This document shows positions 6,468 through 62,357 of a DNA stretch of 64,000 bases, piece by piece. A program made the position numbers and the translations under genes. Numbering within the stretch: position 1 is the first letter of the stretch; the number at the start of each line of letters is the position of its first letter. The notes beneath the pieces were generated by a model that worked only from the letters and a program-made list of their open reading frames with translations, searched no databases and was not told where the DNA came from. The stretch comes from Dimorphilus gyrociliatus (taxonomy: Eukaryota > Animalia > Annelida): NCBI GenBank assembly GCA_904063045.1, contig CAJFCJ010000044.1, positions 62,001 through 126,000 on the forward strand, given 5' to 3'.

Positions 6468-6763
6468 AATGATTTAAACCTGAAGAAGAAAATTCTCTAT
6501 TGGAAATCTTCAACCTCTCTGTAGGTATAGTTAGTAGACCCTGATGAGTCCTTGGTATTCAATATAGAGAGGAGGACGAAACTGTGGTAGGTCTTGTAGG
6601 TAGGAAAAATATTTTGAAAAAATCTTTTCTTTTGGAAATTGTTTTAAACGTCAATTTTTGTGTATTTTTTCTTTGACTGCTTCCCAAATTCCATTGGGAC
6701 TCTTGAAATGTGAGAATTCTGTTTCTCTTTTTTGATTTAATCAAAAAAAACCTTTGCAAACCC
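6468..6763 (+). mobile_element. ~300-nt hammerhead-ribozyme-containing non-autonomous repeat, copy 1 (retrozyme/Penelope-terminal-repeat-like)
   Basis: Alignable by eye with 34784-35089 (whole length) and 23255-23453 (3' part). It contains the HHR core and has no credible ORF. Confidence 0.75.
6536..6594 (+). ncRNA. Minimal type I hammerhead ribozyme
   Basis: Stem I agacc 6536-40/ggtct 6590-94; core CUGAUGA 6541-47; stem II gtcct 6548-52/aggac 6573-77; GAAAC 6578-82; loop tgtg; cleavage triplet GUA 6587-89. Confidence 0.85.
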
Positions 6764-7496
6764 CAACAACTAAAGAGAATGTGGGGTGAGAGGAACTAAT
6801 ACATAAGATTTAATCAATGACTAAAAAACAGAACTTTTTCCATAAGATTGACTTTTTTCATTTTAAAATTAAAATTTTTGACAATAGCTTTCAAAATTTT
6901 TTCATTTATTTTTAAAAGGATAAAGAGTCTTGAATATGTGACTGTGATGTAATTAACATTTTGATAGTTTGTTGTGTTGATAATGTCTTGCTGTTAAAAC
7001 CAAATGATGAAATTTTATGGTGTCAGTATACACTTATGGTGATTTAAGATTTCTGATGGAAGAGTTTGCATATTTTTGTATATTTTTGTATATTTTTGAT
7101 AGCTTTTGGTAGATTTTGGGGTTTTTTTTGTAAGAGACTAACAATTAGTAAGTTATAAAGCATTATGATTAAACTGTAAATATTCAACTCCCACCAATAT
7201 ATATGGACTGCCCAAAAACAGATCAAGTATTGAACATTCTATTTATCTAAATTTCTCCATGCACATTTGTCTAGCAGCACCAAGATACATATAGTATTTA
7301 ACACACACCAACTAGGCTAGAATTATTTTCCAATCCATTCATTAGCCAAAACCAACCTTACATCCTGGACTAACTAAATGAATGTTGGAAATGATTTTGT
7401 TTATACAATATAGTATAAACTCATCTCATACAATAACAGGAGTACACTCCTCCTAATAACAAACACCAAGCAAACACCACAACAAACAAAAAATTT

Positions 7497-7603
7497 AACA
7501 ATGACAATATACAAGATTCTCTATTTTGGTTATATTTTACACCTTTCCAGTTGTAATATTGTTATTTCAGAGGAATGCGACATTACTGTTGATAAACGAA
7601 TCC
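7497..7603 (+). repeat. 107-bp near-identical duplicate of the 5' coding end of the PAN/apple ORF (43765-43871)
   Basis: aacaatgacaatatacaag...gataaacgaatcc is identical to 43765-43871 except tcag/tcgg. It opens a 56-codon chimeric ORF 7501-7671. Confidence 0.9.
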
Positions 7604-8453: not shown

Positions 8454-11400
8454 TTACAGATTACTTTCATCAATAACTTTTAAATTCCTTTTATAAATTT
8501 TCACTGAATTGATACATTGCTGAACTGCTGTGATTATTGACATAATTACATGAAATAAGATTACCATTAGAGTATAATATAAATCATCAAATTTGTAGCT
8601 GTTGCTCAAATTCAAAATGGTAGCTTAAAAAAGAGCAAAAACAATCATAAAGTAAGATAAATAGGAAGAAAAAAAAGAAGATAAAAACAAACTTGTTATT
8701 GATATAAAAATTGAAAATCTAATTTTTAAAATAATTTGAAAAAATGATTTGAAAATATTGAATTTTTGAAATTTTGTAGAAAGTATATTTTTTATAGATA
8801 GGAAAATAGTTAAGTAAAATATTATTGATATTAGACAGTTGATTGTAGTAAATGAATATAAATGTTGTGTATTGTCTCCAAAACAATAAGTTATGAATAA
8901 ACATAATACTGTTTTAGAATAATACTCCTGAAAAGAATTCCAAACTATTAGGTCTGTTAGCATTATTCTAATAATCCTACCTCAAATGTTAAAAATGGCA
9001 CAAGTGAAATTGCCATTGAAACCATAAAAGAAAGGATTGATATTAAAAAAAATGATTTTTTAAATTTAAAATATTTTTCAAAAATTGCAGAATGATAAAG
9101 AAAAATATATTTATAAACTGCAAATATTAAAATCATAAAATTTGAAAATATTAATGATGTATTGGCCAGAAAGCCAAAAGTTTGGCATTGATAGCCTGTT
9201 CTCCATTCATAATCACTATCCATATAATATCCATAGTATTTTAAATTGGCATTTCCAATTATTATCAAATAACAACACAAAATTATATTGGAAAATTGAA
9301 ATGTTTGATAAAAGATTTGTGAATAATTTGCATTGATAAAATGGGAACAAAATGCAAAAAAGTTTGTAATTAATCCAACACAAGCTACAAACCAGATTGC
9401 AAGACGTAGGAAGTGACCATTCAACAACCTTGAACAACTGTAAATTACTGTTGAATTTAGTGTACACTCTGTCATGTTGAATTTTAATTTTTCTACAACA
9501 CAGCACAAGTACAGTCTATCAGAATGTAATACTTTTAATGAAGTTAAATTAATTAAAAAGTCATGTGATAAATAAGCTGGAAGTTGAGTGTGGTTTAAAT
9601 ATAAATAAGCTAATTTTGATAATTTTGCTAAAGATTTCAAGTGAAATTGTTGAATTTGAGAATCAATAATTTTCAAAGTAATAAGATTGGTTAGAAAAGA
9701 AAAATGAATGTTATTAATACTCAATAATTCAGTTTTTGATATTTCTAAATATAATAAACTTTTTGAATATTTAAAAAATTGAATAGGAAAATTGATTAAT
9801 TGATTTTCACTTAAATCTAAATATTGTAAAATTTGATAAGACCACAGAGAACTTTTTGATAATTTTATGATCTTATTCTTCTTTAATATTAATGTTACTA
9901 AATTACTAGTTTTCCAATTGGGAATTTCATTCATTTCTCCATTTGTTAATGAAAGATAATTTAAAAAATCTTTCACTTTTAATTCAATATCAACATTTTT
10001 TAACATTAGATTTACAGATAGAGTTTTTATTGGATATTGAAATTTTAAAAATACTACTGAAGTAGTAGCTTTTTCCAATTTACAATCAATTTGTATGAAA
10101 TTATAACAATTACAAAATTTTGAACAATTATAATAGATATCATCCATGCAAAATTTTTCATCATCTCCAAATTTACAATCAACAATTCCATCACAAACTT
10201 GATCAAATAGCAAGAATACTGTCTCATTTTGGCAAATAAATGTTGACTGTGGCCTAAAACTATTGCAATTTTGCTCATCATCACCATAGTGACAGTGAAT
10301 GATATTGTCACAAACATTTTTAATTGATATACAATAATTTTTATCATAGCACTGATATTCACCAATTGAACACGTGGCATTATAACAATGATCAATTTCA
10401 TAGTATGGAAAATTTGCAGCAGTTAGAATTTGATTAAATGAATTATATTTTAATTTGCAGTATGTTTGACTGTTTGTTTTTGAAATATTTAAAGTTTCTA
10501 AAACTTCATTAAAAGCAAATTGTTTGTTGTAATTGAAGGTAAAATCTTCCTTTCTAAGTTTAAAAAAAAAGTAAGATTTATAATTTGACCTTGAAAAAAA
10601 GCTAAAGGTTATGTTAATGTTTATTTTTTATTCTTTTAAAATTATTTAAAGCATAATTTACTTTTTAGATTCTGAAGTCATTTTTTTCAATCTGTATAAA
10701 GAAATTATGACTAAGGCAATAACATTAAATGAATTTTACATACAATCCAGATGTCAAACAATTTTTCAGATAAACCATAGTTTTATACCTAACATGACAA
10801 TCACTTCTGAAAAAGCATTTATCATTTTCCTCTAAACAGTTTTTCTCACAAAAATGAGTTTTGCATTTATCTGAAAATATATTTGAATAGTAATTTTGCA
10901 CTTGAAAATTGAAATGAAAAAACACCTCTACAAATTTCTCCTTCATCACTTCCATCAATGCAGTTTTTTTCATTATTGCATACTTTATCTTTTGAGATAC
11001 ATTCACCATTTTTACATTGAAAACTTCAAAAATAATATTTATTTGCTTTGTGGTGTTTTATCCTAAAACTGACCTTGTTATTGGACATTCAAAATCTGTA
11101 ATTTATTTAAAAAGATAGAATTGTCTATGTTTGAAAGAATTTATTTACAGCAATAGATTTCATCACTTCCATCTTGACAATTATTGACATAATTGCAAAG
11201 AAAATTTAAAGACAACTGCTTTCCATTTAAACAAATATATTTATTGTTTATTGTTGACAAACAGTTCACTTCATCTGATTTATCAAAACAATCATATAAT
11301 CCATCACAAACATTGACAATGCTTATGCAATGCATGGAATTTTTACACTGAAATAATCCTTTTGGGCAGTTTTCTATTGGTTTGATTAACAATTTTGAAT

Positions 11401-14400
11401 AAATAAATTCCTCATAATTTTCAATATTTGCTATTTTGAGAGATTTGTCAATTATTTAGGTCAAAGAAATAGAATTTAAAATTATTATACTTAGTTTATA
11501 TTGACATAGAAAAGCTGAATATACAACGCTTGTACATTCTTTTGGCTTTAATGTTTCATAATGAATTTGAGTGCATGAGAATTTATCAGAGAACTGTACG
11601 AGTCCTGTCATTGCTTTTTGCATATCTGTTATAGTATACTTTTTTGAATACAGTTCAAAGCTTGTAAAGGGATGATAAAAGAATGTCAGCATTTTAAGGG
11701 TATTAACTATATTTTTTGTTGCTTTTACTTTTGCAAATTGGATTCCCGAGATAGAGCTTCAAGAGCAGTTTCTCTTGTGTAAGATTCTTTAAGAGAGAGA
11801 TTAAGAATAAGTGGATTTTTTATGTTAAGAATCCATGTTTTTATTTAAATGAAATAAGGTAACTTTCATAAATTCTTACTTATTGGAAGAAATGTCAAGC
11901 TTTGTGGAAATTGTTTAGAAGCTTTCAATAAACTGTTTTCCATTGTAATTCTACGCATGTTTGAAAATATATTGTATTCTCCAGGAGATGATATTTCCGG
12001 GAGACTCATGTTCAATCCATTGCAAATATCTTTGGCTTGTGCATGACTATACCTTTTTCTTATGTAATCAGCAATAAGATACGGAGTGATCAATTTATAA
12101 CACTTTTCATCATAGGATATATCACTTTCTTTACAGTCTAGAAAGATTTGTTTTTATAAAAAAAAAATTAAAACACACACATACTATTGATTAGAAGTTT
12201 CTGTTGAGAACATGTGATTTCTAAAGCTCTCATTGGACATAGTTTTGGTGGAGTCCTAGTACATTGTTTCAGTACTGACACATTTTTAGGGCAAGAAAGG
12301 ACAATGCAAACATCATTAAAATGAAAACCAGAAAATATATATTTAGAGTATTTGTATCCAAAATATCTGCAAATCATCTGTATGCATGTATGTATGTATG
12401 TTTATTTAGAGTTCTATGTAAAACAAATCTAACTGGTTGTCCTTTTCTGATAAAGAATGGAAGAGAAACTTGTTTTGTTGCAAAATCAATAAGAGCTCCA
12501 GCATTTTCTAAGAAATCACAACCAAGTATTATAGCCATATCTAGTTTTTCCATAATAAAGAATTCTTGTTCCATAATTCTTCCATTAAATTGAATATTCA
12601 GTTTTGTTTTTCCTTTTGTCTTTAAAGCATTTCCCTCTGCTGAAGTGATGATTGGTAAGCCAGTAGTTTCTTTCTTGATGAATTTAGAATCCATTAACCT
12701 GATTTCTTTTTCTGTAATAAATGACAAAAGTGCTCCTGAATCACATAAAGCAATAACCTCTCTTCCATTATGATTTTTCATTCGAAATTGGAAATCTTTT
12801 CTGCCTTTTACCAAAGAAGTACACTTAAAATGTGCGATTTTCTCTTCTTTGAGATTAAATATTGCCATTCTTCCTTTAGAAATTTCAGTTTCATTAGGTT
12901 CATCAGGTCCAACATGTATTAGTCTGTTAAAGCTGCCTTTTTCATTATTTCCTGCATTTCCATTTCTTTGTTGTTGAAATCTATTTTGAGAAAAAGGTTT
13001 AAATGTATGTTCATTTTGATTTGAGTTACTCTGATTGTTGTCAAATCTCCTTTTGTACTGTTTGAATTCATTTTCGCTTTCTTTTCTTGCATTATCAAAA
13101 AATATTTCTGCTCTTTTTGCCAATTTAATATACTGATTAACTGAGTTAATCTTTCCATCTTTTTCCACATGATTAACAATTTTTCCTTTAAGACCATTCC
13201 TGAATACAGTTAACAGTTGAAGTTCTCTAACTCTTTCAGTAACACAAGCCATTTCAGTAGTATTGAATGGTAGGAATTTTTCCACAAGTTCTTTACTTCT
13301 TCTAACAAAACTTTGGACAGTTTCATCATTGAACTGTCTCAATCTATCAATTTCTTTTTTGTAAGCCATAGGATCTGGATTAAATTCTTCATCCAATGCA
13401 TCCCAAATTTCATTTTCATTTGCCATGGAGGGTAAACTTTCAATAACATCTCTGGCTCTTCCAGTAGTGTATTTTCTCAGCATTCGAACTCTTTTCTCTT
13501 CTGTATCCCAAAGGTTTAATTCACAAGCTGTTTGAAAGTTCCTCTTAAAGGCCCAAGTATCTTTGCTACCAGAATAGGGTCTCAGCAAAGTAGTATTAGG
13601 TTTCTCATTAGCATCAATTAGAAGACTTGCAATTGTCTTTTCCAAAGCATTATCTTGAATGCCATCATAACTGAATTTTGGTTGAGTAGGATCAGGATTA
13701 ACCATACCTTCAGGAATTGTAGCTGCCCCAGTCATCAAATGGTACTTTAAAAAGCTATTACCATCAACTTTGGCTCCACTACTTTTAATTCTCAACATTA
13801 ATTCATTAATTTTTGAAAGATACTCATCTACTTCCTTGGCTCTGGCTTTGTCATTCTCATAAACCAAAATAACATTCATTGAAGTAGCATTGTGGGCTGT
13901 CGACTGCGCCATATTTGTACTTTGTTGTATTGTAATTGTAGGAATTTCTGGTTCGTCACAACTGTAATCGTCCTTTCCAATCATTTACCAACTTGCCAAA
14001 GTACTGGTCCAAATAGAACCTTTAAAGTTCGTCCACAAATAGTCTAACAAAGGCAATTTCGGTAGAAATTGATTAACAAAACACCAGTATTTCGTCCAAA
14101 GAATATGTATTGAGTAAAATGAGCTTCTAGTTCTAAACAAGCTAGTTTAAACAACTAGCTGACGGTTAGAAAACTGAACTATCAACTGTTAATTTCGTAG
14201 GGTTTATATACTCTTTTAAGGGTTGATAGTTCACAAATTTCAATGTTCACAAAAACAAAAGTAACATTTGAAGACAAAGAAAAGTTCTAAATATGGTCAT
14301 GTTTTTATTGTTTTCCTCTTCTAAATAATAGTTGAATTTCGAAGGTTGGAGAGTTGCATAAGATGTAACAATTTTAGTAGGACAAGTCCAACAATCAAGA

Positions 14401-15912
14401 AAACATGTAGATTGTATATTTGACCGTTTTTATATTCTACCTTAATAATGATATTCAATTGATTGAGTTAGTAAATTTAGCATCAGCATATAAGGAGGAA
14501 GTATATCTGATTAATGCATGTTAAAAAGAACAGTATTGTGTATACAATACTGTTGAATAGTGAATATAATCTAACCTTAGAATTTAAGCATAATTGATAA
14601 TTAATTGAACTAGTTTTAGTTCGAAATCATAAATTTATGGATTAATAAATTGTAATATTAATGCTAGGTTGCAAATAGCAAATATTCTTTATATAATTCA
14701 ATAGGTTTTATTACTGCATAATGTGTATGCACTGCCCTATGCGAAACTAGGTCACTACTGCTTATCTTTATCAGTGCTATCTGCATAGTACAATACTGGT
14801 TCAATACTACTTCTCTATTGTAGAATATAGCTGACGAATGTATGTGTACAGATGTTAACCTGGGGAAAATGGTACTAGCATTTTTTCCCATTGGATTTCT
14901 TATTCCAGAAATTTCAAATTCAAATTGTTTGTCTATTTCAAAAAAAATTCAAAATCTCTCTCACTCTCTCTTAGTGATGAATATTAAAATTTTACCAAAA
15001 CAATAAAAGTTTTTGAATTTATAATCAGTTGAATTGAATATTTTAAATTGAGTTAAATCTCCATAGAATATTTCTCTTTCTATCTTTTTCTTATGATATG
15101 GTATGTTTAAATGATATACTTTATTACAAGTTTCATATTTGAATTATTCTAAATCAGATGGAATATAAATGTAGCTTTTATCTTTATATCTAACTTTTGT
15201 TTGCAAATTTTGTTCATATTTTGTAAATTGAATAAGAACTTTATCAAAAAGAAAGAAAATTATCTTTTTTTTAAAAGAAAAACAAAAAAAAGCAGTTTAT
15301 ACATGGAATATTTCTCTTAAAACAGACAACTCTAAATATGTTGAATTTTTCCCAAGTTTTATTGCATAGGCAAAGACAACTTTAGAAAAACAAAAGAAAA
15401 ATATTCTTGTTAAAGAAATATATCATTTTTGCTTATATTTTAAAATAATGTATACATCACTACTGTTTCACTTGTATGTTTATAATAGAGATGTGCCATT
15501 AATGACTCTAAAATATATAATAGAAGAGAATTTATAGAAAATAGGAAAATTTCTTTGTTTTTTCTTCATTTTTACTTTTATATGTTGTAAATAGAAATGG
15601 GATACTCAAATGTTCATCAAAAATTGAATTCCTTGAACATAGCATTGCTCCAATATTAAAATAATATTCATGAGCTTCCTTATTAGAAATAGTATATGGT
15701 ATAACTGTTAAAATTCTTTCATCAGAAAAAAGAACATTGTATGTAGCAGAATTTTCATTTTCGTCAACAGGATCACTAAGAGATAATCTTGAATAATTTC
15801 TATCAAATTTTTTGACAAAATGTGAATTGCAGAATGTAAACTCTTTCTCATTTGATAAAACGTCATTAATTGATAATGTAAAAATTGAAAATAATTTTAA
15901 AAAGTGAAGCAT
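8454..15912 (-). CDS. Multi-exon LDLa-LRR-7TM receptor A (GRL101/RXFP-like) with N-terminal SRCR-like and C-type-lectin-like segments; gypsy insertion in an intron
   Basis: Signal peptide [20 protein letters not shown] (15912); ICRYFGY exon (12377); CTL-like [19 protein letters not shown]; about six LDLa repeats (e.g. [26 protein letters not shown]); LRRs ([11 protein letters not shown]); TM helices in 8963-9400; last exon ends IDESNL* at 8454. Exon chain approximate; 3' part may be frameshifted. Confidence 0.75.
12374..13912 (-). CDS. Ty3/gypsy Gag + aspartic protease ORF (pol truncated after protease)
   Basis: Retrotransposon Gag-like region ([23 protein letters not shown]...[12 protein letters not shown]), protease motif ALCDSGA and IILGCDFL. 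No RT/RNaseH/integrase follows. Likely ATG overlaps the PBS at 13912; the track ORF starts in the LTR at 13984. Confidence 0.88.
   Translation of the reverse strand: MAQSTAHNATSMNVILVYENDKARAKEVDEYLSKINELMLRIKSSGAKVDGNSFLKYHLMTGAATIPEGMVNPDPTQPKFSYDGIQDNALEKTIASLLIDANEKPNTTLLRPYSGSKDTWAFKRNFQTACELNLWDTEEKRVRMLRKYTTGRARDVIESLPSMANENEIWDALDEEFNPDPMAYKKEIDRLRQFNDETVQSFVRRSKELVEKFLPFNTTEMACVTERVRELQLLTVFRNGLKGKIVNHVEKDGKINSVNQYIKLAKRAEIFFDNARKESENEFKQYKRRFDNNQSNSNQNEHTFKPFSQNRFQQQRNGNAGNNEKGSFNRLIHVGPDEPNETEISKGRMAIFNLKEEKIAHFKCTSLVKGRKDFQFRMKNHNGREVIALCDSGALLSFITEKEIRLMDSKFIKKETTGLPIITSAEGNALKTKGKTKLNIQFNGRIMEQEFFIMEKLDMAIILGCDFLENAGALIDFATKQVSLPFFIRKGQPVRFVLHRTLNKHTYIHAYR
13897..13911 (-). promoter_or_regulatory. 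Primer-binding site TGGCGCAGTCGACAG
   Basis: Begins 4 nt downstream of the LTR end. TGGCGCAGTCG matches the tRNA-Ser-type PBS known from 17.6/297-like gypsy elements (tRNA identity from recall, not searched). Confidence 0.75.
13916..14850 (-). mobile_element. 5' LTR of the gypsy element (~935 bp, TGTAC...GTACA)
   Basis: Reverse complement of 48550-49452. Shared homology starts at tgtacacat and ends at caacaaagtaca, immediately before the PBS. Confidence 0.9.
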
Positions 15913-16093: not shown

Positions 16094-19000
16094 ATGATTT
16101 TGAAATATACAGTTTCTTTTATCTTCAATTCTTTTATAGTATTTTATCAAGTTGATTGTAGAATTTTAGAATTTACACCTTGCCAACATGTTGTATATTC
16201 CAGAGGTTATAGAAATAAGGAATTTAAAATGGGTGAGATAATTAGGAATACTACTCATCAAATAACGGCTTTTATTGTAATAAGAAATCATAAATGGAAC
16301 ATTACATATAAATTGGCATTTATATCTTCATATTTTAAAAATAAAGACACATATTTTTCATTGGGAAATGATATTTGTAAACAAAATGGCTACGATCCTT
16401 TGTATAATATTATAGAGAAGGATTTTGAAACATCCAGTATAAGATAAAAAACACACCTTTTATTTTTAACCTATTTTTGTGTCTGATAAATTTTTCTTAT
16501 TAAATAAAAACCAGGTGAAAACATTGCACTACTTAAAAATAGAAAAGTTGGCATTAAATTTTCCAAAATGATGATATGAATAATAAATTAATTGATAATT
16601 TTCTTTGGTATGCAGAGAAAATATCGTGTAGTGTTCCAAAAATCAAGAAAATGTTCTCCTAATGGTCCTTTTAAACATGTTTTACTAATTACTTGCTGGA
16701 AAACTAATATAATATGTAAAAAAATAGAATTTTACGAATTTCCTACTTTTTGTAATTAAATATGAAAATTTTTGCTATAATTCTAGATTTTTACAGTTGG
16801 AGAAGAAAATTCAAATATGTTGACAATAGGATAATATTTGCAAGAATCAATAAAAAAAGTTATTTGATTTCAAGTGAAAATATGACTATAAAAAATTTAT
16901 GTGAGAAAAGGTACATCTTGGATTCAACAGTTTATGCGTCTGGAAATCCAAGAACAAATTGTTTCTATGGTAATGAAACACATTATCAACTGTATACATA
17001 TTCGAGAATTAAGCAATGTAAAACCTATAAAAAGTGTAATTCTGGCAAAGAAGGTCAGTAGTATTGTTAACTGTTTTATAATGGAAAAATATCTTTAAAT
17101 TTGATTCTAAAAGACATATCAGAATATAAATATAGATTTATACCATATCCAAAAGAGAATAGTTCATTTATACCTTTAATTATTTCAAAGAAATATGGCG
17201 CATTTAAAATTTACACTAAAAGTTCCAGTTACAATAGAATGATTCTCATTCTACTCTGCAAACATTTAAATTTTACATCAACAAACCATAGAAAGATTTT
17301 AAGGTGTCCTAAAGGGATGGCAGTTATAAGTTCTTCGCAAATTGCTTCTTTAGTTTGTCCTGATGAGATTAAATCGATACTTGATTGTCATTTTATGAGA
17401 TGGACCAAATTTAGTGATAGACATTTTTGTATAATAAATTGCCAAGAAAGAATAATAAATGAAAAATTTCGATTTGTTTTGGATAATTTTGCAATAATAT
17501 ACAAAAATGGCTACCAACAGTCGATGAAACAATATTCAAGTATTACTGGGCGTTTAGAAATGAATTTCTACAATGTATGGTCTAATGTTAATGTTAATCC
17601 ACTCTCATATAAAGCATTGGAGGTACTTGTCTTCTATTTTCTTCTCTTCTTTCTTTCTTCTAAAAGTATCTTTTACAGTTGATTTGTAATTACTTTAATT
17701 TTACTTATTCATCATTTGTCAATGTTTTCAAGTATCCATTTGTCAGAGCTATGCCATTTTTTGTTCAATGCGATAATTGTACTGATTTGGAATGTTGTTC
17801 TATTGAAATAAATACAAGAAAATCTTTATCTTGGAAAACACTTGGACAATTGGAAATTAATTGTAGGAAAGATTCAGTATATCCGAAGAGTTTGTAGCCT
17901 TATTCTCCATATTAGTCACGTGATAAATATGTTTTGTTCCATAGCTTGCTCAAAAGAAAATGATTTTAGATTTAATGATAAATGTTACTCTATCCATCAC
18001 CTGAAAAATGAATCGTATTTATTTGAGAGAGGAGCAAAATTTAAAATGTTTGACAATTTTCCAACAAGGCAAGAAATGAATGATATTTGCAAGTCAGAGG
18101 GAAAAATTATGTTTAGCCCTGATTATTTGGAAGAAATTGCTTTTTTTGACTATATTAAAAAAGTAATTCTTACAATAGCAAGTTTTGGACCAATTCTTAA
18201 ACTACCTTTTGGTTAGATGGTGTTGTCTTTTTTTGCAATCTGAATATTTGATTCCGTTTTCTGATTCATTTAGAATATAATACACCAAAGGAAGTAACTG
18301 GAATGTCTGGATATCTTAAGCCAAAGTTAGTTAGATTTATCATCATTTTTCATAATATTTAGTGCCATTCTTCTTCTTCTTCTCCTACACTCCTTCTATA
18401 GTCTGAATGGAAGGGACCAGATTACTACACATTATGACAATCTATATATATATCATGACAAAGGTTCATGTCTATATCTTTACAATTATATAATTTTGAA
18501 TAGAAAATGCGAAGATGAACAAGTCAAAGTTTTTATGTGTGAAGAGTCATTTGGTAATAATTAACACAATTAGTTGAAGAACAAAATTTCCCCTCAGAGT
18601 GTATAAAAGTTGTGAGTTAGAAAAAACCTTTTCAATTAGGTCAAGATCAAATATGAAGATTAGATTAAGAATTTAAAATATGTTTGGGGAATATTTTGTA
18701 GCTTCTTTTGCTATTTTGTTGTCAATTTTCTCATTAACAATCCTGTGTTAGACGAACTGGCTAGAAAAAGTTTATTTAGTGCTGATAGACTACTAATACC
18801 AACAATAGTTGAATGTCCATTAGGCTTTTTCACTTGTCAGACATATAAGTTTTGTCTTGCAATGATATATTTATGTGATGGTAAGAACAATTGTTTTGAC
18901 GGAAGTGACGAAAGAGATTGTCCTGATAAAAATGAATTTCAATGCAAAAATGGACAACATATACCTACCCAATTTGTTTGTGATTTTTTAAATAATTGCA

Positions 19001-21596
19001 AAGATAGTTCAGATGAATCAGACTGCTCATTTGAATTAATAACTGAATCAAAGAACTCAACGAATGCTGAAAGGTGTTGAAATTGTGTAGATTAAAATTT
19101 ATTTTCAACACTATTATCATTTTGTTTGTTGATTAACAGATTTCAATGCAAAAATGGACAAATAATTACACAAGAGCAGAGATGTAATAACGTTTTGAAT
19201 TGTTTTGACAGTAGTGATGAAGATAGCCAATGTCGAGGTGAACTAGTCTCACAAAATCAACTAAATGATATATATCTTTTTTAATAGAAAGATGTAAAAC
19301 TTTGATATTTTGCGATAATTTTTGTATGCCAAAAGAGTTTATTTGCGACATGGAAATTGATTGTAAAAATTATGAGGATGAGGGTAAATCCATGTGTGAA
19401 AATCCAGCTGAGAATTTAAGCTTTAAATATGAATTGGGACAACATCAAAACAAAAATAGAACTTACTTTTGCCGAGTAGTGTATAATTCTTTAGGCAAAA
19501 TACAAACGAGACCTAATTTTCCAAAATACGATTTGAGAGATTGCAAGAATTTCACATGTATGGCTGGCGAATATCAATGCGCCGAAAAGAATTATTGTAT
19601 TCCATTGAATAAACTATGTGATAATATATTTCACTGTTTTCTGGGAGATGATGAAGCAGATTGCAGTATTTCTTTCTTTCCTTCTTTCTTTCTATCAATC
19701 ATTATACTTTTATAAATAGACAATTTTCATCCACATTCAACATTCTTGTGTACATTTGACCATGTGTTTTTAAACATCTCGAAACTCTGTGATGGAATTA
19801 TTGATTGTCAAAGAGGAGAAGATGAAATATTCTGTTATGATTTCCATACATTCATTTGCCCAAAATTCTGTAATTGTAATAATTTAGCAATTATTAAATG
19901 CTCAAATGAAGAAAATAATGAAATTGATAAACTGTCATTTAGTCATGGTATAAAAACAATGATTTTAATGAGTATATCACAAAATATAATTATAGATCTT
20001 AAAAAGAGTTTAACATTAACAAATTTACAATATGAAAGTAGTAATCTATTAGAAATTCCAAAATTGTTCACACCAAATCTTATCATTTTAAGTTTAAGAA
20101 ATAATAGTATAAAAAGGATTAATGGCACAGATATTTCCAGTTTAAATATTCTTCAACACTTACATCTAAGTGAAAATCCTTTTACAAACATTCCTTCATC
20201 TTTTCTGAATGACGCAAGAAGATTATTATTTTTGAATTTAACTGAAACCAAATTAAATAGTATTAATAATAATCTTTTTAGTAATTTAACAAATTTAATT
20301 ACATTAGAAATGATAAATTGTAAATTTCAACAATTTAGTGATGATCCATTTGGTAAATTGGAAAAATTGGAATATTTATTCATGATGAATACAAAATTAC
20401 CAAAATTCTTAAATTTAAATTTAATACGTAATTTAAAATCGTTAAAAAGATTATATTCTGAAAGTTTTCTTTTATGTTGTATGACTAAAAAGTTTAAGTT
20501 AAATGTTGAAAAATGTCTGCCAGATGAATCAGTTATAAAAATTTGTGCTGATTTAATTGGTTCACAATCGCTTAGAATTGCAATCTGGATTATTGTATTT
20601 ATGGGAACAACTGGAAATCTATTGGCAATTTATACTCAGATAAAATCATTTAAATCATCTTCTGTCTTTTTTCTAGTACTTCATAGTTTTGATCTATTAT
20701 TAAGTATCTATCTAACAATAATTGCCATAGCTGATATATATTATAAAGGTGTTTACATTGAGTATGACTCACAATGGAGATTTGGTCCTATCTGTACACT
20801 ATGTGGTTTTATAGTTAATTTATCAATTATTTTATCAAATTTCTCATTACTTTTAATAACATTTGAAAGATATTGCGTAATATGCAAACCGTTAATTCAT
20901 AAGAAATACTTTTATCAAACAATTAATTATGTTTATATTGCTTCAATTCCTCTACTCTTTGGAATAATTACAACAATAACACCGTATTTTCTCTTTGAGG
21001 TTAGACATAGAATATTAAGAATGGGCGGGATGTAGGAGGGAAGGGGGATGGCACGCCTTTTGTTTTAATTTTCCTATAACGAACCTTTGTAGGACTATTT
21101 CTCAAGATCAGTTGTCTGTTTCTCTCTACACATTACATCGGAAAGGGTGGAAGGATGGCAATATTCATTTATAACATTCAATCTTTTTATCATTTTTCAA
21201 ATAATCATTCTAACCTTTTTCTATTTTCAAATAATAAGAGAAATATGGAAGTCAAAAAAAATTAATAAGAAACAATTTAAAAAGAGAATTTTAAATATAA
21301 TAAAAAGCAGTCTAATAATAGTTATAACAAATACTGTGTGCTTTTTTCCAGTTGCAATTTTAGGTATAAAGATAATAGACAAATTTAATAAATTAACATA
21401 GAGATAATCTCTTTTTGTAGGATTTATGGCACTGAATAAAAATCATTCAATAGATGAACGAGTCTATCCTTGGATTATAATACTACTTATTCCATTAAAT
21501 TCAATGTTTAATCCCTACATCTATTGCGCGACAGTGCTAATAGAGTACTTGAAAAATAAAGTCAAAGCTAGATTGCAGACGATTAATTACATGTAA
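16094..21596 (+). CDS. Multi-exon LDLa-LRR-7TM receptor B (GRL101/RXFP-like) with SRCR-like and CTL-like N-terminus
   Basis: Signal peptide MILKYTVSFIFNSFIVFYQVDC; ICKQNGY motif; CTL-like FNDKCY...ICKSEG; six LDLa repeats (18.8-19.85 kb); LRRs; 7TM with ITFERY and NPYIY; stop TAA 21594-21596. Confidence 0.85.
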
Positions 21597-22125: not shown

Positions 22126-23254
22126 TAATAACAAACATTTCCTACAATTTTCATTCAAAAAACTATTTCTTTTCTTTTAATTTTAATAAATAATAAAATA
22201 AAGAATATAGATATATTTTAATAAATTATACATATTTTTGAGGGAATTTTTAAACACTAGATGGCTCTCTATACAGCTGAATTCCATTGTAAACGCAAAC
22301 ACAATACAACAAAGTACAATTAGAGTTAGGAACTGCTTCCTCAGTCAATTTTTCAATACAGACAATTCATCAAATGTATTCTCAACGGAGTTTGTCTTAT
22401 CTTCAACTGATAAAAATGTTTGAGATAAGAAAAATTTCTGTAATGTTATACAGCTTCTCAAATGCCATTGTAACTTTTGTTCTTTTGGCAATTAGATGTA
22501 CAAAATGTCAGCCACGAACGCATACTAATTCAATGTGGAGAGAGAAGATATTCGCATTTAAAATCCATTCCATTAATTTATTGCTCAGTTCAAACCCTCT
22601 ACTGCATTGAGAATTCGTTGATTTATCGACAATGTTGATTGGTCTTTTTTCTATTATTTTGAATATTGGTCAAAGAATTGAAAGATAAATGAAAAATTTG
22701 TACATAAACAAACCTGCTTTCGCCAAAAGGTACTAAGTATCATAAGAAAAAGACTTAGAGGAGCATTCCTTGTTCAACTGAAACATATGACTTTTTTTCA
22801 TAGAATAATCGTCTAACAGTTTAATTAAATACGATATTCTTAATGTCTTACTTATTGATACAAATAATCATTTTGTCAATGCAAAACCTTTTCGTTTCAT
22901 GAGAAACACTATTGGAAAAAAAATTTCACAAAAACAATGAATAATAATTACTAAAGACATTTTTCCAACTTTTGAAATGTCTAATCTCTCATAGAACCAA
23001 ATATTACAATTGTCATCAATATTTCACGCAAATTAAATACTTGAAAAAATGAGACATGATTATTTGATGATAAATGCTACATTTAATCCAAAATATTTTC
23101 AATATTATCAATACAAATACTAAGAAAGCATGAATATATTGGAAAAACAGAGAAACATACCAGCACTATTCATTGACCATTTTAAATAAAATGAACAAAA
23201 ACATTATCTATATTTCGATTATTCTATCAATTTTCATTATATATATAAATATAT

Positions 23255-23453
23255 GGTACGTCGAGTAGGTAGGAATTAAGAAAAAAATTTTTGAAAATTT
23301 TTTGAAAAATTTTTTCTGTTGGAAATTGTTTTAAACGTCGATTTTGGTGTATTTTTTCTTTGACTGCTTCCCAAAATCAACTGGGACTCTTGAAATGTGA
23401 GAATCCTGTTTCTCTTTTTTGATTTAATCAAAAAAAAAACCCTTTGCAAACCC
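23255..23453 (+). mobile_element. 5'-truncated copy of the hammerhead-containing repeat (ribozyme core absent)
   Basis: ggtacgtcgagtaggtagg...ggaaattgttttaaacgtc...gactgcttccca...tgggactcttgaaatgtgagaa...ctttgcaaaccc matches 6586-6763. Confidence 0.8.
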
Positions 23454-24105
23454 TAAATACTGTTCTAAAGAATCAGAAAAATTCCTACAATTACAATTAT
23501 GATTAATGTATTTTGTTATCTTTTATAACTGTTATAATTTTTTGTATAACTTTTCTTAAAAGTAAACCAAATGAATATATATCTTTAATTTCATTATCCT
23601 TTGTTTTATAAATTGGATGTTTCAATAAAATGTTAAATGTATTACTATCATAGTCAGCTTTCTAAAATTTAGAAACAAGAATTATTTGTTTAATGAATGA
23701 ATTATTAATGAAATTAAATAGAAAAATTTTTTTTGCTTACCTTGCAAAATATTAATTCTAATGAAATATTTCCATTAAATGAAAATTGTTTTTGGTGTAC
23801 AAATATAATGGCTTTAATGATTTGTATTGAAAATTTATAATATTGTATAGATTCAGCAAATTCTTTATCAATTTGGAATTTTTTAGTGCATTCACAACAA
23901 TTTTGTATTAAATAATTTTTATTCATATTTGAAAAAAATGAATCAACTAAAGTGAAGTGGAAATCAATTATGTTTTTTGTGGGTATTGTTTTTTTAAAAA
24001 AAAAAAATTTACAAACATTTCAAAGAAGCTTCGTATTGAATTTTTTCAATTAGGGTAATTCTACTTGTCAATAAAATTTAGGTCAATATATAAAAAGATA
24101 GAAAT

Positions 24106-27100
24106 TTACCTTTGAATTGTTTTTTTAATATGTAAACTAGACTTAAACTTGATATACCCTTTCAGTAAGAATACTATAGAGTTGTGAAGGGAAATTAAAG
24201 GTAAACTACATAAAATTATTTTATTATATATAGAATTTTGAATATATAATTGAAAAAATATAGAATAGAATCCTGTGTGAAAAAGTACAATTTGAATTTT
24301 AAAAATATTTCTCAAAGTCAATAGTTCCAGTATCATTTACCAAGAAATAAATATAATAATGATAATATAGCTTTTGTTCCCATTTCAGCAAAAGCATTTT
24401 TAACAAACTGAGCCAAGGAACTTCTATTTGAACTTGAAACAGTTTTTCTTGAACTTATCAATAAACAATACATTTTATAAAAAGTAAAGCAGGAGCTTAA
24501 ATAACAAAATGGTATCAACAATGAAAAGTATATAAATGATAATTTCCATTGATCTAATGAATTATTATTAGATCTGATATGAACATTAAAACAGATTAAT
24601 GATGATGAATGAAACTCCTTATGAAAAAAGTAACAAATTCAATAATCCTTGAGTAGTGATCAGCACATTTTGCAATTAACACACTTAGGCTTACCTTATT
24701 ATTTAGAACAGGTGAAATAGCTATTGCTAAAGAAAATGTTACTATTGAAAAAATGGTGATGAAAGGTATTTTTGTAAAAAATGGTTGTTTAAAAGGTTGT
24801 TTAATAACTTGATATCTCTCAATCATAATTAAAAATGTACATATTGCTGATAGTATGGATGAAAATGTTAAACTTATTCCCAATATTTCACAGACAATAC
24901 TAGATCTCCATGAATGATTGAATACTAATAGATTTATATCAGAAATTGCCAAATCCCGGATGATAATTATTAGTATATAAATACACGATAATAAATCACT
25001 AAGACACCTGCATATCATCAGAATTTTTAAAGGAAAGAACCAATGACATAAAAGCATAATTGAAGAAATATTTCCACATAGTCCACATATTCCAAACAAT
25101 AGAAAAATGATTAATAGTTCATCAATGAAAATATGAGATTGGCATGATTTTATCAGTGTTGTGGATTTACATTCTGTCTTAACATTCACCATTCTCCACA
25201 GAAGACAACAAATGATGTGATGTTTAGTAATGACCCTTTTAATTGATATCAATCCTTCTACTAAATGTACACCATCACTCTCTCTAAAATCAGTATGTGA
25301 TAATTCTAAATTTTCTAAATTCCTCAAATATTTAAATAAATTCTTTTCAACACTTTTCAAAAATAAATTTGACATTTTTAAATCAATTAACTTTTTTAAA
25401 TTTTCAAATAATTCCATTTTCAATAGATTTATATTATTTAATGAAATATCTAAATATTCTAGTTCAGTACAATTCCATATTTGTATTATATCCAATGAAA
25501 ATAAAGTATTGTTGGATAAATTTAAATATTTTAAAAGTTTCATTGTATAAGGAAATATAAGATAGTTGTCTAATTTGTTGTCATGGAGATTTAAATACAC
25601 AATATTTGGAAATTTTGTTGTAAAGAATGAATAATTGCTTGGTGAACTATTCATTACTTCTAAATGGATGAGATTATTTGAAGGTTCAATTGAAACTTGC
25701 TCTATTAAGTTTCCAATTAGAATAATTGTCTTATATATTTTGGTCATAAAACTCAGTGCAGTCTTGTCATTCTCTGACAATAATTCATTTGGCTCTAATT
25801 CACAAGCAATTGCCAGAGAATGTACTCTACAACTGGAAATATTATTCAAGGAACTGTATGAGCAAAACAGTTCATCACTCCCATAAAGACAGTCAATAAT
25901 ACCATCACAAACATGATTGAGTGGAAAGAATTTCTTTCTCTCATTTCTACAATTGAAATATCCCTGAGGCATGAAATTCTCTAAAATAAGATTGTTCATT
26001 GAAATGTTTGTAATTTTTAGTAATTTCTGTTTACCACAGCCATATTCATCATCGCCTTTGTAACAATGATTGATACCATCACAGACCAGATCAACTGATA
26101 TACAATAATACTCTTCAATGCATAGATACTGTCCAATGGAACAACTGTCAACCTCTTCACAGTCTTGCTTAAAGACGTTTGTTATGGCAACACCCATTGA
26201 TGAATGTGTGAAATAACATGGTTCAAAAAAGTCATACTTTTCAAATAATGAACTTTCATCATTGTTTACAATACAATCAACTTTCCCATCATCCACTGAC
26301 AACTCATGAAGACAATAATTACTGCATTTGAATTGATATTCATGATGACAATCTGAAAAAAATTGTATTATTATCTTTTTCAATAGAAATTTCAACACTT
26401 TTGAATACCTTTTGTAAAATTGTTCATAATTGCCTTGGGATGTGAACATAATTCATCACTTTTATCAAAGCAATTGTATTCATTATTACAAACATCATTT
26501 TCATTGACACATTGTCCATTGTGACATTTACTAAATGTGGAAATTTAGTTTTAGATGCTTTTGATGAGCTATATCTTTTTAAAAGTTGCATATAAACTGG
26601 TAAATATAATTACATTTCTCCATCAAGGCATTCATCTCGCTCTTTTAACAAAAAAGAAAATAATACAAGTGATTGTATTTTTGTTAAATCTAATGACAAA
26701 CCACAAAATAGTTCATCTGATCTATCTGAACAGTCATTATTTAAATTACAAACATAATTTAATTCTATAGAGACATTTGTTGACAAACATTTGAATTTGT
26801 ATTTAATAATTTCATCACATTCCCATTCATCTTCACCAGATTTACAATCTCTATTTTTATCACAAACATATAAAATATTAATGAATATTCCATCTTCTTT
26901 ACATAAGAATGTATTCTTCTTTGCTTTAAAATGTTGAAAATTTGAGAAGTAGTTGACAATTTCCATATCAAAATCTTTTTAGTTTTTTTTTTTAAAAGAA
27001 AATGTTTAATTATTATTATTATTATTTTTAAATCAAACATTTTTGTGCTTACTTAGTCGTTTTTGGCATATAACATAGCCAAAGTTATTTTTGTATTTAC

Positions 27101-31691: not shown

Positions 31692-34424
31692 AGGGGTCCA
31701 GGAGAAAACGTCCACAAGAGAAAACATCCACAGGAGAAAACGTCCACAGGAGAAAATGTCAACAAGAGAAAATGTCCATAACTTAGGAGAAAACATCAAC
31801 AGCAATTTTTTATATGAACAATGGTTTAGAGATTAATATTTGGTATAGATAAATAGGTTTAAATATTATTATTGAGATTATAAAAATTATGCAATGATAG
31901 ATCCGCCATATTGTTGAGGAACTATTTCCTGTTTATGTTTTCCTGTTTTTGGTTCCTTTCAAAAAGAAAACAGTTTTGTTAAAATACTATCTGCAAAAGA
32001 TATTTACTAAGTTTAATTACAAAACATGGCAATAATAGAAAAATTTGAATATCTTTGGATAGATCTTTTAAATTTTTATCAACTTAAGGTAAGTTTATCA
32101 TTAACTAAATCAGGTTTTTGAAAATTTTGAGCAACCATTTTGGCTAACTTTCACTTCTTGTTGATAGATAATGGGATATTGCTACAAATGCAAGGAAAAA
32201 ATGCTTGGAAGACAGCATACAAAAAAATGTCAATTATGCCACCATTTGATAATGATTCATAAGAAATGTATTAAAGTGAGTTTTAATTCAATTTTTAACA
32301 AATGGTATTTTTCTATATGATAATTGCATTAAACAGGAAATGATCTGTTTCTTTGCAACATTTGCCAAGACATTTCCAAGAGAACATGTTTGGTCACATT
32401 ACAACATCTGTCTATCAACCAAATCAAAAGAATGGATTCTGTATTGGAAAAAGGAGTTAAGATAACAGATGAACAAGTAAGCACTGATGCTATCACTGAG
32501 AATGATGTTGTTAATAATGGTTCAGATGTTGAAAAAATGGAAAACAAAATGATGTTGTGGAAGATAATTATGTTATTGTTTAAAACAATTATACAGAAGT
32601 AATGATTGAGTGTAACATTGGGATAACAACAGAAAATCTTTCACATAATTCAAATAATGTGATGGAAACTTCTTTCCAAAATTCTCCAACATCAAAAAAA
32701 GTGGATATGGAGCCAACTTTCAAAGTTTTGAAAGGAATGAGTCAAAAAGGCAAAGATCTTTTAGCTTATGATGGTTATATATTTATAATAAAGATGAAAA
32801 GATTAACAAAAACATTCTGGACATGCAGTGTAAGAAACAAGAACAACAAATGTCCAGCAAGTGTAAATCAATTGGAAGATCAATTTTATCCTGGAAAAAA
32901 ACCTCATTCCCATAAAAGAGAAGATGGACTGGAAAAGAAAATTACAATTAGAAAAGAAATTAAAAAATTGTGTGAAACTGAAACTTTCTTTTCTGGAAAA
33001 CATTTGGCTGAAGAAGTATTAAAACATCACTGTGACTCTGAAGATGCTATTCCATCAATGGATAACTGCGGCAGATTAGCAAATTGGACAAAAAGGAGAT
33101 TTCAGCCAGCAGAGCTAACAGATGTCCACTCAAATTTTGATTTATCATTTATACCTGATAATTTTTTGGTGAAAGATATTAAAATGAAAGATGACAGGAT
33201 AATAATATTTTCAACTCCAAAACAAATTGAGCTTTTGTCAAAGGGAAAGATATGGTTTTTGGGTGGTACATTCAAATGTGTTAGAGATCCATTTTACCAA
33301 TTGTTCACTGTTCATGGATTCATTAAAAAACATGGAGAAATGAAACAAGTTCCCTTACTGTTTGCATTTATGGCCTCCAAGAAAAAGACAGCTTATAAGA
33401 AATTATTTCAGGTAAATGCTTTTCAATTTGCAAAAACAAAATATTAAAAATGTTAAAACAGTCAATAAAGGAGCTGACCAATCAACATATACCAATGAAA
33501 TTTGTTGTTGATTTTGAAAGGGGTATCTGGAGAACTTTGTCATCTGTTTATCCTGAGGTTGCAATTAAAGGATGTGTCTTTCACTGGATCCAATCAGTGT
33601 TTAGAAAAATTCAAGTAATCCTTATAATCATTTGTCATGAAAATATGAATATATATTTTAATTATAGGAATTGGGCTACTCTGGTGAATGTAAAGCAAAA
33701 GGAGAGAGCTATCATTGCATGAAAAAAATAATAGCGTTACCATTTCTACCATCAAACATCATTGAGAGTGCATTTAAAAACATGGAGCAGGCCACTTCAA
33801 CATATTTAGGACCACTTATTGATTACATGAAGAACCAGTGGTTATATGGATATTATCCATCACACACTTGGTCTATATATGGTGAAGCAATCAGAACCAA
33901 CAATGATCTGGAAGGATGGCACAACAGATTAAATAGGAATATTCATGCAAATTCCTCATTGTATGTGATCATTGATGAATTAAAGAGAGAAGCAGAGTTG
34001 ATTTCCCTTTACAAAAAATTATGAAGTGAGAGAAAGATCTGTAGACAGCAAAGAAAACCATATCAGAAAATTCAAAGTCAGATTTTTGGTATATGGGAGG
34101 AATTTGAAGTTAGATCAGTATCTGCATCAGAGTTATTAGAAAAGGCAGCAAACATTTACATTATGTCATGAACAACTTTAGCTAGTTACAAAAAACTTAG
34201 AAATTTTTTGGAATTCATATTCTGGTAGTTTATACATGTTTTGTAGTTATCTCTTTTATATTAGACATATCTTATTACATGAATAAAATATTACACATCT
34301 TTTTTTCTAATTTTTCATATTTTCATTCAAATATTAATCTCTAAACCATTGTTCATATAAAAATTTGCTGTTGATGTTTTCTCCTAAGTTATGGACATTT
34401 TCTCTTGTGGACGTTTTCTCCATA
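31692..34424 (+). mobile_element. Second Phantom-type MULE with subrepeat-built TIRs
   Basis: Left 31699-31842 (about seven ggagaaaacgtccaca-type units plus a unique segment) is inverted at 34328-34420. Internal FLYWCH-MULE transposase. No TSD found, so ends are approximate. Confidence 0.88.
32171..34171 (+). pseudogene. PHD + FLYWCH + MULE transposase, defective
   Basis: MGYCYKC..GRQ..CQLC...HKKC and CNIC; FLYWCH (YDGYIF..FWTCSVRNKNNKCP); GGTF in place of DGTF; DFE, GCVFHW, TNNDLEGWHNR; frameshifts and stops (e.g. 34022). Confidence 0.87.
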
Positions 34425-34783: not shown

Positions 34784-35089
34784 AATGATTATCTGGAGAG
34801 AATTTTATTAGGAAAATTCTCAAACCTCTCAACTTTTCAACCAAACTTTCAAGACCCTGAAGAGTCCCAGATACATAAAATTAGTAGAGAGGGGGACGAA
34901 ACCACGGTAGGTCAAATAGGTAGGAAAATATAAAAAAAAGTTGAAAAAAAATGTTTTGAAAATTTTTTGAAATAGTTTTTTCTAGTGGAAATTGTTTTAA
35001 ACATTGATTTTGGTGTATTCTTTCTTTGGCTGCTTCCCATAAACACTTGGGACTCTTGAAATGTGAGAAGTTCTGTTTCTCTTTTTTGA
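34784..35089 (+). mobile_element. Hammerhead-containing repeat, copy 2
   Basis: Homologous to 6468-6750 both upstream and downstream of the ribozyme. Confidence 0.75.
34853..34913 (+). ncRNA. Minimal type I hammerhead ribozyme
   Basis: Stem I gacc 34853-56/ggtc 34910-13; CUGAAGA 34857-63; stem II gtccc 34864-68/gggac 34893-97; GAAAC 34898-902; loop cacg; GUA 34907-09. Confidence 0.85.
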
Positions 35090-41100: not shown

Positions 41101-41979
41101 TCCAATGATCTCTAGAAGAGTATCATAGGTTTTCCTAACCTCTTCCAGTTTGTAAGTTCTCGACCAAACAACGACTGCGTGGGGAGTATAATGAATTTTA
41201 TGTATAATTTTATAAAATCTAGACTCTTTTATTCCTAATTCATCAGCTCCATCTAGTAGAAAGACTATCTTCCTGGCCTTATCTTCGCACTCTTCGGACA
41301 GGTAGTAATCTAGGATATCTCTTTGAATATTTATATTGTCTACAAGATTGTGATTGAAGATGACGTCTGTAAATGTTTCGGATTTAGAAATTTGTCCCAG
41401 TTTAATGGACAACAGCAAACTATCCTGACATATCAAACCGCAAGCCCAATCGTTTAAAATCTTGTAACAATGATAAGTTTTTCCAATTCCAGCTTCACCA
41501 AAGATAAAAACTCTATTGGAATTTTCCAATCCTTCCATAAATTCATTTCCACAGGTTAGGATACATTTCTCCCTACTACATTGTTTACTTTCGTAGACAA
41601 TCTTTATTGGAGTCATGATATTGTCAATGCTATCAAGATTTGTTTTATCATTAATAAATGGAATTTTTGGAAGAGTAGATATCCTCTGAAGAGTTAACTT
41701 TTTCATTTCTTCAACTAAATTCTTCCAAGTTGATTTTATATTCCAAAAAAGTCTCTGATAGCCAGGTGATTGGAAATCTAATAAAACATTTAGAATATCT
41801 ACCAGTTTACATTTTATTAAATGATTATTGACCAGATTTGTAGAGTTATAATTATGATTAGATAGTATGATTTCCTTTGAAATGAGGTTATTTACGAATT
41901 CTGGTTCATTTAAAAGCTCCTCAAATGAATTTCTATATTGATTAAGTATGGGATTTGTCTCAAATTTCATTCCTTCCAT
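35132..41979 (-). pseudogene. NACHT-LRR (NLR-like) gene, apparently intronless, with multiple frameshifts and a nonsense codon
   Basis: N-terminal death-fold-like segment; Walker A GEAGIGKT; Walker B FLLDGADE; YPL motif; FIHHLFQEYFAAKY; then LRRs with ~57-aa doublets (LxxLNLxxTNL..EIGKNIFENI..CC.IEELNLDSC.FS.EMS..LG.FIG.Q.N). In-frame TAG at 37785-37787; frameshifts near 41000, 40480, 39200, 38480 and 36670. Confidence 0.85.
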
Positions 41980-49452: not shown

Positions 49453-49749
49453 AAAATATAAAACCGAACGAAAATAGGAATAATTTATTTTATATTTCAA
49501 AAAAAAATTTTTTTTATATGTATTGCAAATTGGTAGATATCTTCTCTTTCACCTTCTTTGTTTAAAACAACTGCTAATTGAAATAAACTGGTATCATCTT
49601 TACCAATTAACTAATAGACTTTCTCCTTCTATTTGTGTGATTATGAATAAAATTTGTGAATATTGAAACAATTTTGAAAACTCAATTTTGTTATGTGAAT
49701 TAGTTGAGTTTGTCATGAAAAATAAAAAAGAAATAATTGAATATTAAGA

Positions 49750-61072: not shown

Positions 61073-62357
<1,285 letters not shown>

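Follow-up and report, generated by a model that had tools for sequence, protein, structure and literature searches.

Type I hammerhead ribozymes with a minimal, palindromic helix III are a hallmark of the pseudo-LTRs of Penelope-like elements (PLEs) and of non-LTR retrozymes (PMC4209133), and a helix III of 2 bp with a tetraloop is their normal form in invertebrates (PMC7229834). PLE-type hammerheads are mostly found singly, in dispersed positions (Cervera & de la Pena 2014, PMC4209133), and retrozyme monomers are evenly spread along chromosomes (Li, Clavereau & Pollet 2026 preprint, bioRxiv 10.64898/2026.07.22.740005). Metazoan non-LTR retrozymes are ~170 to 400 nt long and low in GC, and their occurrence in annelids has been noted in a general way (Cervera & de la Pena 2020, PMC7229834). 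PLEs carry the hammerhead close to the 3′ end of the element (Craig et al. 2021, PMC8557442). Metazoan type I hammerheads are thought to work as dimers or to rely on helper factors (PMC4209133, PMC7229834); the Penelope hammerhead of the anole cleaves only in the presence of the element's protein, and reverse transcription of this element begins internally, at a structured, AC-rich site that lies ~90 nt past the cut (PMC11167929). In ~40% of natural hammerheads, stems I and II are joined by a pseudoknot on which rapid cleavage depends (Perreault et al. 2011, PMC3088659).

Here we describe a family of hammerhead-bearing repeats in a 64-kb window of the genome of the annelid Dimorphilus gyrociliatus (positions 62001 to 126000 of CAJFCJ010000044.1, assembly GCA_904063045.1; all coordinates below are those of the window). 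The family probably belongs among the hammerhead-bearing elements of animals, alongside PLE termini, non-LTR retrozymes, and Sm-alpha-like repeats, and would as such be a known kind of element. We found no mention of ribozymes in Dimorphilus in the papers that we searched, and the D. gyrociliatus genome paper does not mention Penelope elements.

The repeat shares with metazoan non-LTR retrozymes a type I hammerhead with a 2-bp helix III and a tetraloop, a non-coding, low-GC unit of ~300 nt that lacks an LTR, PBS, and PPT, and the occurrence of monomers dispersed in intergenic DNA near gene ends. It differs from them in that no tandem units are present in the window, in that the permuted unit is not unusually self-paired, and in that stem II carries a loop of 20 to 24 nt, whereas theirs is short and conserved and contacts loop 1. 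The original prediction regarded both the dispersed copies and the long stem II loop as unusual. The first point does not hold, since dispersed single motifs are the usual arrangement in the literature (PMC4209133; Li et al. 2026). The loop is atypical when set against canonical metazoan motifs, but relaxed descriptors that allow longer loops have already been applied to PLE and Terminon hammerheads (PMC8557442).

With the hammerheads of PLE pseudo-LTRs, including those of Athena and Terminon (PMC4209133, PMC8557442, PMC11167929), the motif has in common the minimal helix III, the G10.1-C11.1 pair, and, in copy 1, a fully palindromic loop. The ribozyme lies a short distance from the 3′ end of the element and the insertion sites are AT rich, which resembles the arrangement in PLEs, and a short 3′ tail, which consists of a single unit and is absent from one of the copies (copy 2), recalls the reverse-telomere repeats of EN-deficient PLEs. 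Unlike PLEs, the repeat has no adjoining reverse transcriptase (RT) or GIY-YIG open reading frame (ORF) in the window, has a fixed 5′ end of its own, and combines a helix II of 5 to 6 bp with a long loop. A third resemblance is to the SINE-like Sm-alpha and Sj-alpha elements of schistosomes, which (as cited in PMC2770079) are likewise short interspersed retroposons (~330 nt) with a type I hammerhead and a weak helix III.

Copies, boundaries, and surroundings of the repeat

Three copies of the repeat are present in the window, every one on the + strand. Copy 1 (6468 to 6766; 299 nt) and copy 2 (34784 to ~35103; 320 nt) are full-length units with a GC content of 32%, the second belonging to a diverged subfamily, and copy 3 (23254 to 23456) is truncated at its 5′ end and has no hammerhead. 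The recurrence of the sequence had been claimed in the original prediction and is confirmed, with the boundaries refined to these positions. The 5′ boundary of copy 1 is common to copy 2: its leader (6468 to 6511) is homologous to 34784 to 34822, with 68% identity and a score equalled by 1 of 2,000 shuffles, and no homology was found between the two copies in the 60 and 120 nt upstream of the leaders. The 3′ boundary of copy 1 is shared with copy 3 (6766 and 23456), beyond which the DNA is unrelated. In the 3′ part, copies 1 and 3 are 92 to 93% identical and copy 2 is 86 to 89% identical to either; in the hammerhead region, copies 1 and 2 are ~78% identical (~22% of positions differ). Random truncation of a longer element would not be expected to leave two diverged copies with the same 5′ end, which speaks instead for a unit whose 5′ end is fixed.

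The repeat is a defined non-coding unit of ~300 nt, in which a leader of ~70 nt is followed by the type I hammerhead, a spacer that is rich in A/T and varies in length, and a conserved 3′ part of ~160 nt, at the end of which are a hairpin and a short, C-rich tail resembling a reverse telomere repeat. There is no + strand ORF of at least 30 amino acids inside the unit, and coding potential at the ATG within CUGAUGA was rejected, as this ATG opens just 7 codons. Nor does the window supply a candidate enzyme: none of the 37 ORFs of at least 95 amino acids that were scanned contains an RT (RVT) or GIY-YIG domain (four further ORFs of this length, which were left unscanned, lie inside or overlap scanned gene ORFs), and the absence of a Penelope RT or GIY-YIG ORF stated in the original prediction is thus borne out. 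Sm-alpha has Pol III promoter boxes. Unlike Sm-alpha, the repeat shows no tRNA relation and no conserved A or B box in its copies, and its ribozyme strand contains many internal T runs (seven or eight runs of at least four per copy); a Pol III SINE model is rejected on these grounds.

The three copies are monomers spaced 16.7 and 11.7 kb apart, no adjacent second unit is present in the window, and neither a circular junction nor a tandem dimer was found in its 64 kb. When the units were permuted from cut to cut and folded as circles, their folds were no better than chance (z = 0.02 and 0.52 versus shuffles), whereas the circles of retrozymes are highly self-paired. No target-site duplication could be discerned by eye at any of the three copies.

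All of the copies lie in short AT-rich intergenic stretches near gene 3′ ends. Copy 1 is downstream of a minus-strand gene encoding an LDLa-LRR-7TM receptor, copy 3 is between two convergent genes of this type, and copy 2, on the strand opposite to its neighbour, begins 29 nt after the stop codon of a minus-strand LRR ORF (35132 to 36706) that is part of a NACHT-LRR gene. The LDLa-LRR-7TM (LGR-type) genes form a paralogue cluster (8963 to 11392 [−], 18745 to 21035 [+], 24596 to 26966 [−], and 47147 to 47521 [−]), and two of the three copies of the family are just downstream of such genes. Segmental duplication together with these neighbours was rejected as the origin of the copies, because the coding repeats are ~70% identical versus 92% for the element copies and the flanks are unrelated.

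The surroundings contain other repeated sequences. The NACHT-LRR (NLR-like) gene (35132 to 41979 [−]) has an LRR part made of at least 17 tandem units of 171 nt (35204 to 38177) with 61 to 77% mutual identity. An inverted repeat of 94 nt, 97% complementary (31749 to 31842 and 34328 to 34421), flanks an ORF for a FLYWCH zinc finger protein (32602 to 33447), and the region from 31749 to 34421, which ends 360 nt before copy 2, looks like a DNA transposon of ~2.7 kb. A gag-protease ORF (12374 to 13984 [−]) within the region 12374 to 14830 adjoins ~900 nt that recur in inverted orientation, with 95% identity, at 48575 to 49457, and the two regions are probably pieces of an LTR retroelement. A direct repeat of 107 nt with 99% identity is found at 7497 to 7603 and 43765 to 43871, 36 kb apart. 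Two isolated (TTAGGG)2 dimers are present (355 to 366 and 46130 to 46141), and the window has no longer run of telomere repeats.

The hammerhead motif and its conservation

Copy 1 contains a complete type I hammerhead at 6536 to 6594 (+), with a predicted cut at 6589/6590. The motif reads AGACC-CUGAUGA-GUCCU-[20 nt]-AGGAC-GAA-A-C-UGUG-G-U-A-GGUCU, and the intact core is exactly as described in the original prediction. The 5′ strand of stem I (AGACC, 6536 to 6540), which is the same in copy 2, pairs with the 3′ strand (GGUCU, 6590 to 6594) and is followed by the core box C3 to A9 (CUGAUGA, 6541 to 6547). Stem II, GUCCU (6548 to 6552) with AGGAC (6573 to 6577), encloses the 20-nt loop II within the span 6548 to 6577 and leads into the core nucleotides G12 A13 A14 (6578 to 6580). 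The minimal helix III and A17 take up 6581 to 6589, with the pairs A6581-U6588 and C6582-G6587 around UGUG and with A17 at 6589. Stem I is open and stem II is closed.

A second hammerhead of the same architecture is found in copy 2 (34852 to 34913 [+]), with its cut predicted at 34909/34910. Its core box is CUGAAGA, a change at the free position N7 alone; the fifth pair of stem II, U-A in copy 1, is C-G; and the 3′ strand of stem I is GGUCA, so that the outermost pair is lost and stem I has 4 bp instead of the 5 bp of copy 1. Stem II is 5 bp and helix III is 2 bp in both. All positions of the core of the type I hammerhead family (Rfam RF00163, clan CL00010; C3 U4 G5 A6 N7 G8 A9 / G12 A13 A14 / A15.1-U16.1 / H17) are present in the two copies, along with the G10.1-C11.1 pair, and no nucleotide is bulged after A9.

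With a type I descriptor of our own, which demands the full core, at least 4 bp in stems I and II, and at least 2 bp in helix III, the only matches on both strands of the 64 kb are these two sites. Across 1,000 dinucleotide-preserving shuffles, the descriptor found 0.018 sites per window, and 18 of the shuffles had any match. Against Rfam, to whose models the original prediction had pointed, neither copy reached a gathering threshold. In local scans, copy 1 scored 29.8 bits with Hammerhead_3 (threshold, 48.5) and copy 2 scored 18.8 bits with Hammerhead_1 (threshold, 34). Most of the long loop II is left unaligned in both cases, as is the helix III loop with the type I model; we attribute the low scores to these two features, the long loop II and the minimal helix III.

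The best Rfam alignment for copy 1 is in a type III register (6516 to 6587, with a cut after 6523), which was rejected, as helix III would then contain two U-U mismatches and stem I one mismatch, and as copy 2 is unable to form it. Rfam chooses this register because the upstream CUGUAGGUA resembles the CUGUGGUAGGU at the predicted cut site. A third GUAGGUAGG, kept in all three copies, is present at 6596 to 6604.

The divergence between copies 1 and 2 is unevenly distributed. The 5′ strand of stem I, GAAA, and U16.1-A17 are identical, as are all eight positions of an upstream island (AACCTCTC) and all eight on the 3′ side of loop II (UAGAGAGG; island TAGAGAGG). Identity is 33% in the linker before stem I, 50% in the 5′ half of loop II, 50% in the region of loop III, and 33% in the A/T spacer after the motif. 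Within the ribozyme, the differences are the U7→A change, the compensatory replacement of U-A by C-G at the fifth pair of stem II, changes in loops II and III, and the outermost pair of stem I. Disruptive changes are absent from the ~30 positions that we counted as constrained (core and inner helix), which by our calculation has a probability of ~0.008 to 0.0002 at a per-site divergence of 0.15 to 0.25.

This pattern of substitution (N7, one compensatory pair, and loops) indicates, at the level of sequence comparison, that selection has acted on the fold. Since only two copies in the window bear a hammerhead, the covariation rests on single events, and, as these are copies of a transposon, the constraint would have operated on the source elements rather than on the inserted copies where they now lie. 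The architecture of the motif, its rarity in shuffled DNA, and the distribution of changes support the view that copies 1 and 2 carry a real-looking type I hammerhead with a minimal helix III within a mobile non-coding repeat.

Helix III, a candidate pseudoknot, and the 3′ part

The helix III hairpin of copy 1 is predicted to be unstable (+0.9 kcal/mol), and the motif has a predicted energy of −8.7 kcal/mol with this hairpin and −9.6 kcal/mol without it. Because helix III is just 2 bp long, the ribozyme probably requires an aid, for which there are three candidates. The first is a second copy of the RNA, with which a double hammerhead could form via self-pairing of ACUGUGGU; the self-complementarity of this sequence, noted in the original prediction, amounts to a duplex of 8 bp (−3.6 kcal/mol) in copy 1, and the ACCACGGU of copy 2 self-pairs at 6 of 8 positions. 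The second is a protein or a chaperone, the anole PLE being a case in which this has been shown. The third is a candidate pseudoknot within the unit.

The putative 5′ strand of this pseudoknot is a CCUCUC island in front of the motif (6514 to 6519, extended to CCUCUCUGUA at 6514 to 6523 in copy 1), and the 3′ strand is GAGAGG in loop II (6567 to 6572), directly next to the 3′ strand of stem II. The complementarity extends to 10 bp in copy 1 (6514 to 6523 with 6563 to 6572) and there dominates the predicted fold of 6500 to 6610. Copy 2 carries the same complementary pair (34825 to 34830 with 34887 to 34892), and complementarity as observed in both copies was reached by 7 of 5,000 leader shuffles. 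Topologically an H-type pseudoknot, the pairing might stack on stem II and could tether the 5′ strand that leaves stem I. As neither strand varies, the pair offers no covariation, and the helix could instead be an inhibitory alternative fold. Like the contacts in pseudoknot-stabilized hammerheads (PMC3088659), it would join the strand that leads out of stem I to loop II by 6 Watson-Crick bp, holding stems I and II parallel; unlike those, it is predicted from conservation islands and complementarity in two copies.

The part of the unit downstream of the ribozyme is the best conserved. The 3′ module (6606 to 6727) is 86% identical to copy 2 and ~93% identical to copy 3. It is followed by a hairpin, U6-GAU-UUA-AUC-A8 (6728 to 6750), whose innermost pair shows a compensatory change, from U-A in copies 1 and 3 to C-G in copy 2. 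The hairpin is followed in copies 1 and 3 by a tail, CCTTTGCAAACCC(C/T)AA (CCTTTGCAAACCCCAA at 6751 to 6766 in copy 1), that copy 2 lacks or has in diverged form. The tail of copy 3 ends in AACCCTAA, one reverse-telomere unit CCCTAA (23451 to 23456); that of copy 1 ends in AACCCCAA. From the cut site to the 3′ end of copy 1 is 177 nt. In the anole PLE, initiation ~90 nt past the cut sets the end of each insertion, just past the ribozyme, and its optional “tail” (PMC11167929). By analogy, we infer that the conserved 3′ module and hairpin may be the region at which the mobilizing RT recognizes the RNA and initiates.

Copy 3 bears on the same question from its other end. Its homology starts at TGGTA|CGTCGAG, which aligns with TGGTA|GGTCTTG of copy 1, 0 to 5 nt upstream of the position equivalent to the cut, and the sequence upstream of this start is unrelated to the hammerhead of copy 1. 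We estimate that random truncation would fall so near the cut in ~3% of cases (~10 of 300 positions). This start is compatible, as a single case, with the copying of a cleaved RNA, although the five extra matching bases disagree with a template starting exactly at the cut.

One metagenome contig (L001; Ga0209208_10000907) was matched by a 21-mer from the 3′ module. The contig has, at 2328 to 2359 (−), a block of 24 nt identical to 6693 to 6716 (ATTGGGACTCTTGAAATGTGAGAA), with 29 of 32 aligned bases shared with copy 3; a broken ORF for a pogo-like DDE_1 transposase lies ~250 nt upstream of the block, and the contig shows neither a hammerhead core nor any further similarity. It was set aside as a relative, the similarity being limited to a block of 24 to 32 nt that probably reflects chance or a shared short motif. 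A hammerhead pattern specific to the family had no match in the metagenome contigs.

Origin of the family and alternative explanations

The three repeats are best explained as insertions of a non-autonomous, Penelope-associated, retrozyme-like family of ~300-nt non-coding units that is present as monomers, a reading that we consider likely. It is supported by the two complete hammerheads, the defined non-coding unit, a distance of the cut from the 3′ end like that in PLEs, and the compensatory change in the 3′ hairpin; the length and GC content of the units also fit metazoan non-LTR retrozymes (PMC7229834). Against it stand the lack of a PLE ORF, tandem dimer, or circular junction in the window, the Rfam scores below gathering, a circular fold at the level of shuffles, and the lack of a target-site duplication. 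Of the retrozyme- or PLE-derived family proposed in the original prediction, the type I hammerhead in a mobile repeat stands, but the window offers no PLE ORF or tandem unit to go with it.

In the proposed cycle, transcription of the unit, by Pol II or as read-through, would be followed by cleavage of the RNA after A6589 by the hammerhead. A Penelope-type RT, presumably encoded elsewhere in the genome, would recognize the conserved 3′ part and copy the RNA into AT-rich DNA.

The main rival holds that the copies are 5′-truncated ends or pseudo-LTR pieces of an autonomous PLE whose ORF lies outside the window. A hammerhead near the 3′ end and the clear 5′ truncation of copy 3 are what such pieces would look like. 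However, random truncation would not produce the shared 5′ end of two copies that come from diverged subfamilies and are preceded by unrelated DNA, and no ORF remnant adjoins any of the copies, so that we regard this explanation as rather improbable.

Less likely still is that the hammerhead is a decayed or never-active relic, with the motif surviving via young copies and the repeat moving or persisting without RNA cleavage. Several observations would agree with this, from the instability of helix III in a monomer and the sub-threshold Rfam scores to the poor cleavage in vitro of the minimal hammerheads of metazoans (PMC4209133). In the anole, the PLE insertion reaction did not need cleavage and no reads ended at the cut site (PMC11167929), and Naiad PLEs thrive without hammerheads (PMC8557442). 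However, the divergence of copies 1 and 2 from each other is not recent, given the identity of ~78% in the motif region and of 33 to 50% in the linker and loops, and over this divergence the essential positions and inner pairs have stayed intact, with one pair changed in a compensatory way, an outcome of low probability by the calculation above.

Finally, it is very unlikely that the copies are 3′-untranslated region (UTR) ribozymes recruited by the host to control the receptor and NLR genes nearby, in the manner of the discontinuous hammerheads of some mammalian 3′ UTRs: the position of all three near gene 3′ ends (copy 2 at 29 nt past a stop codon, copies 1 and 3 downstream of LGR-type genes) would suit such a role, but copy 2 is antisense to the adjoining gene, copy 3 has no ribozyme, the whole repeat is conserved and not the ribozyme alone, retrozymes that overlap exons are known to favour 3′ UTRs (Li et al. 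2026 preprint), and in a compact genome most intergenic DNA is near a gene end.

Within the preferred reading of a non-autonomous, retrozyme-like family, a more specific and doubtful proposal is that the pseudoknot permits cleavage of the monomer despite the minimal helix III and would thereby account for the long loop II as well as for the dispersed single units, and that copy 3 is a retrotransposed 3′ cleavage product. If this is true, copy 3 would be a genomic footprint of cleavage in vivo.

Hammerhead retroelements are well documented in animals. The family described here adds an annelid example from a very compact genome and leaves the current picture unchanged. As a small and well-delimited unit, it is suited to asking whether a hammerhead with a minimal helix III needs dimerization, whether a pseudoknot from the tail to loop II may replace it, and whether the cleaved RNA is the template that is copied.
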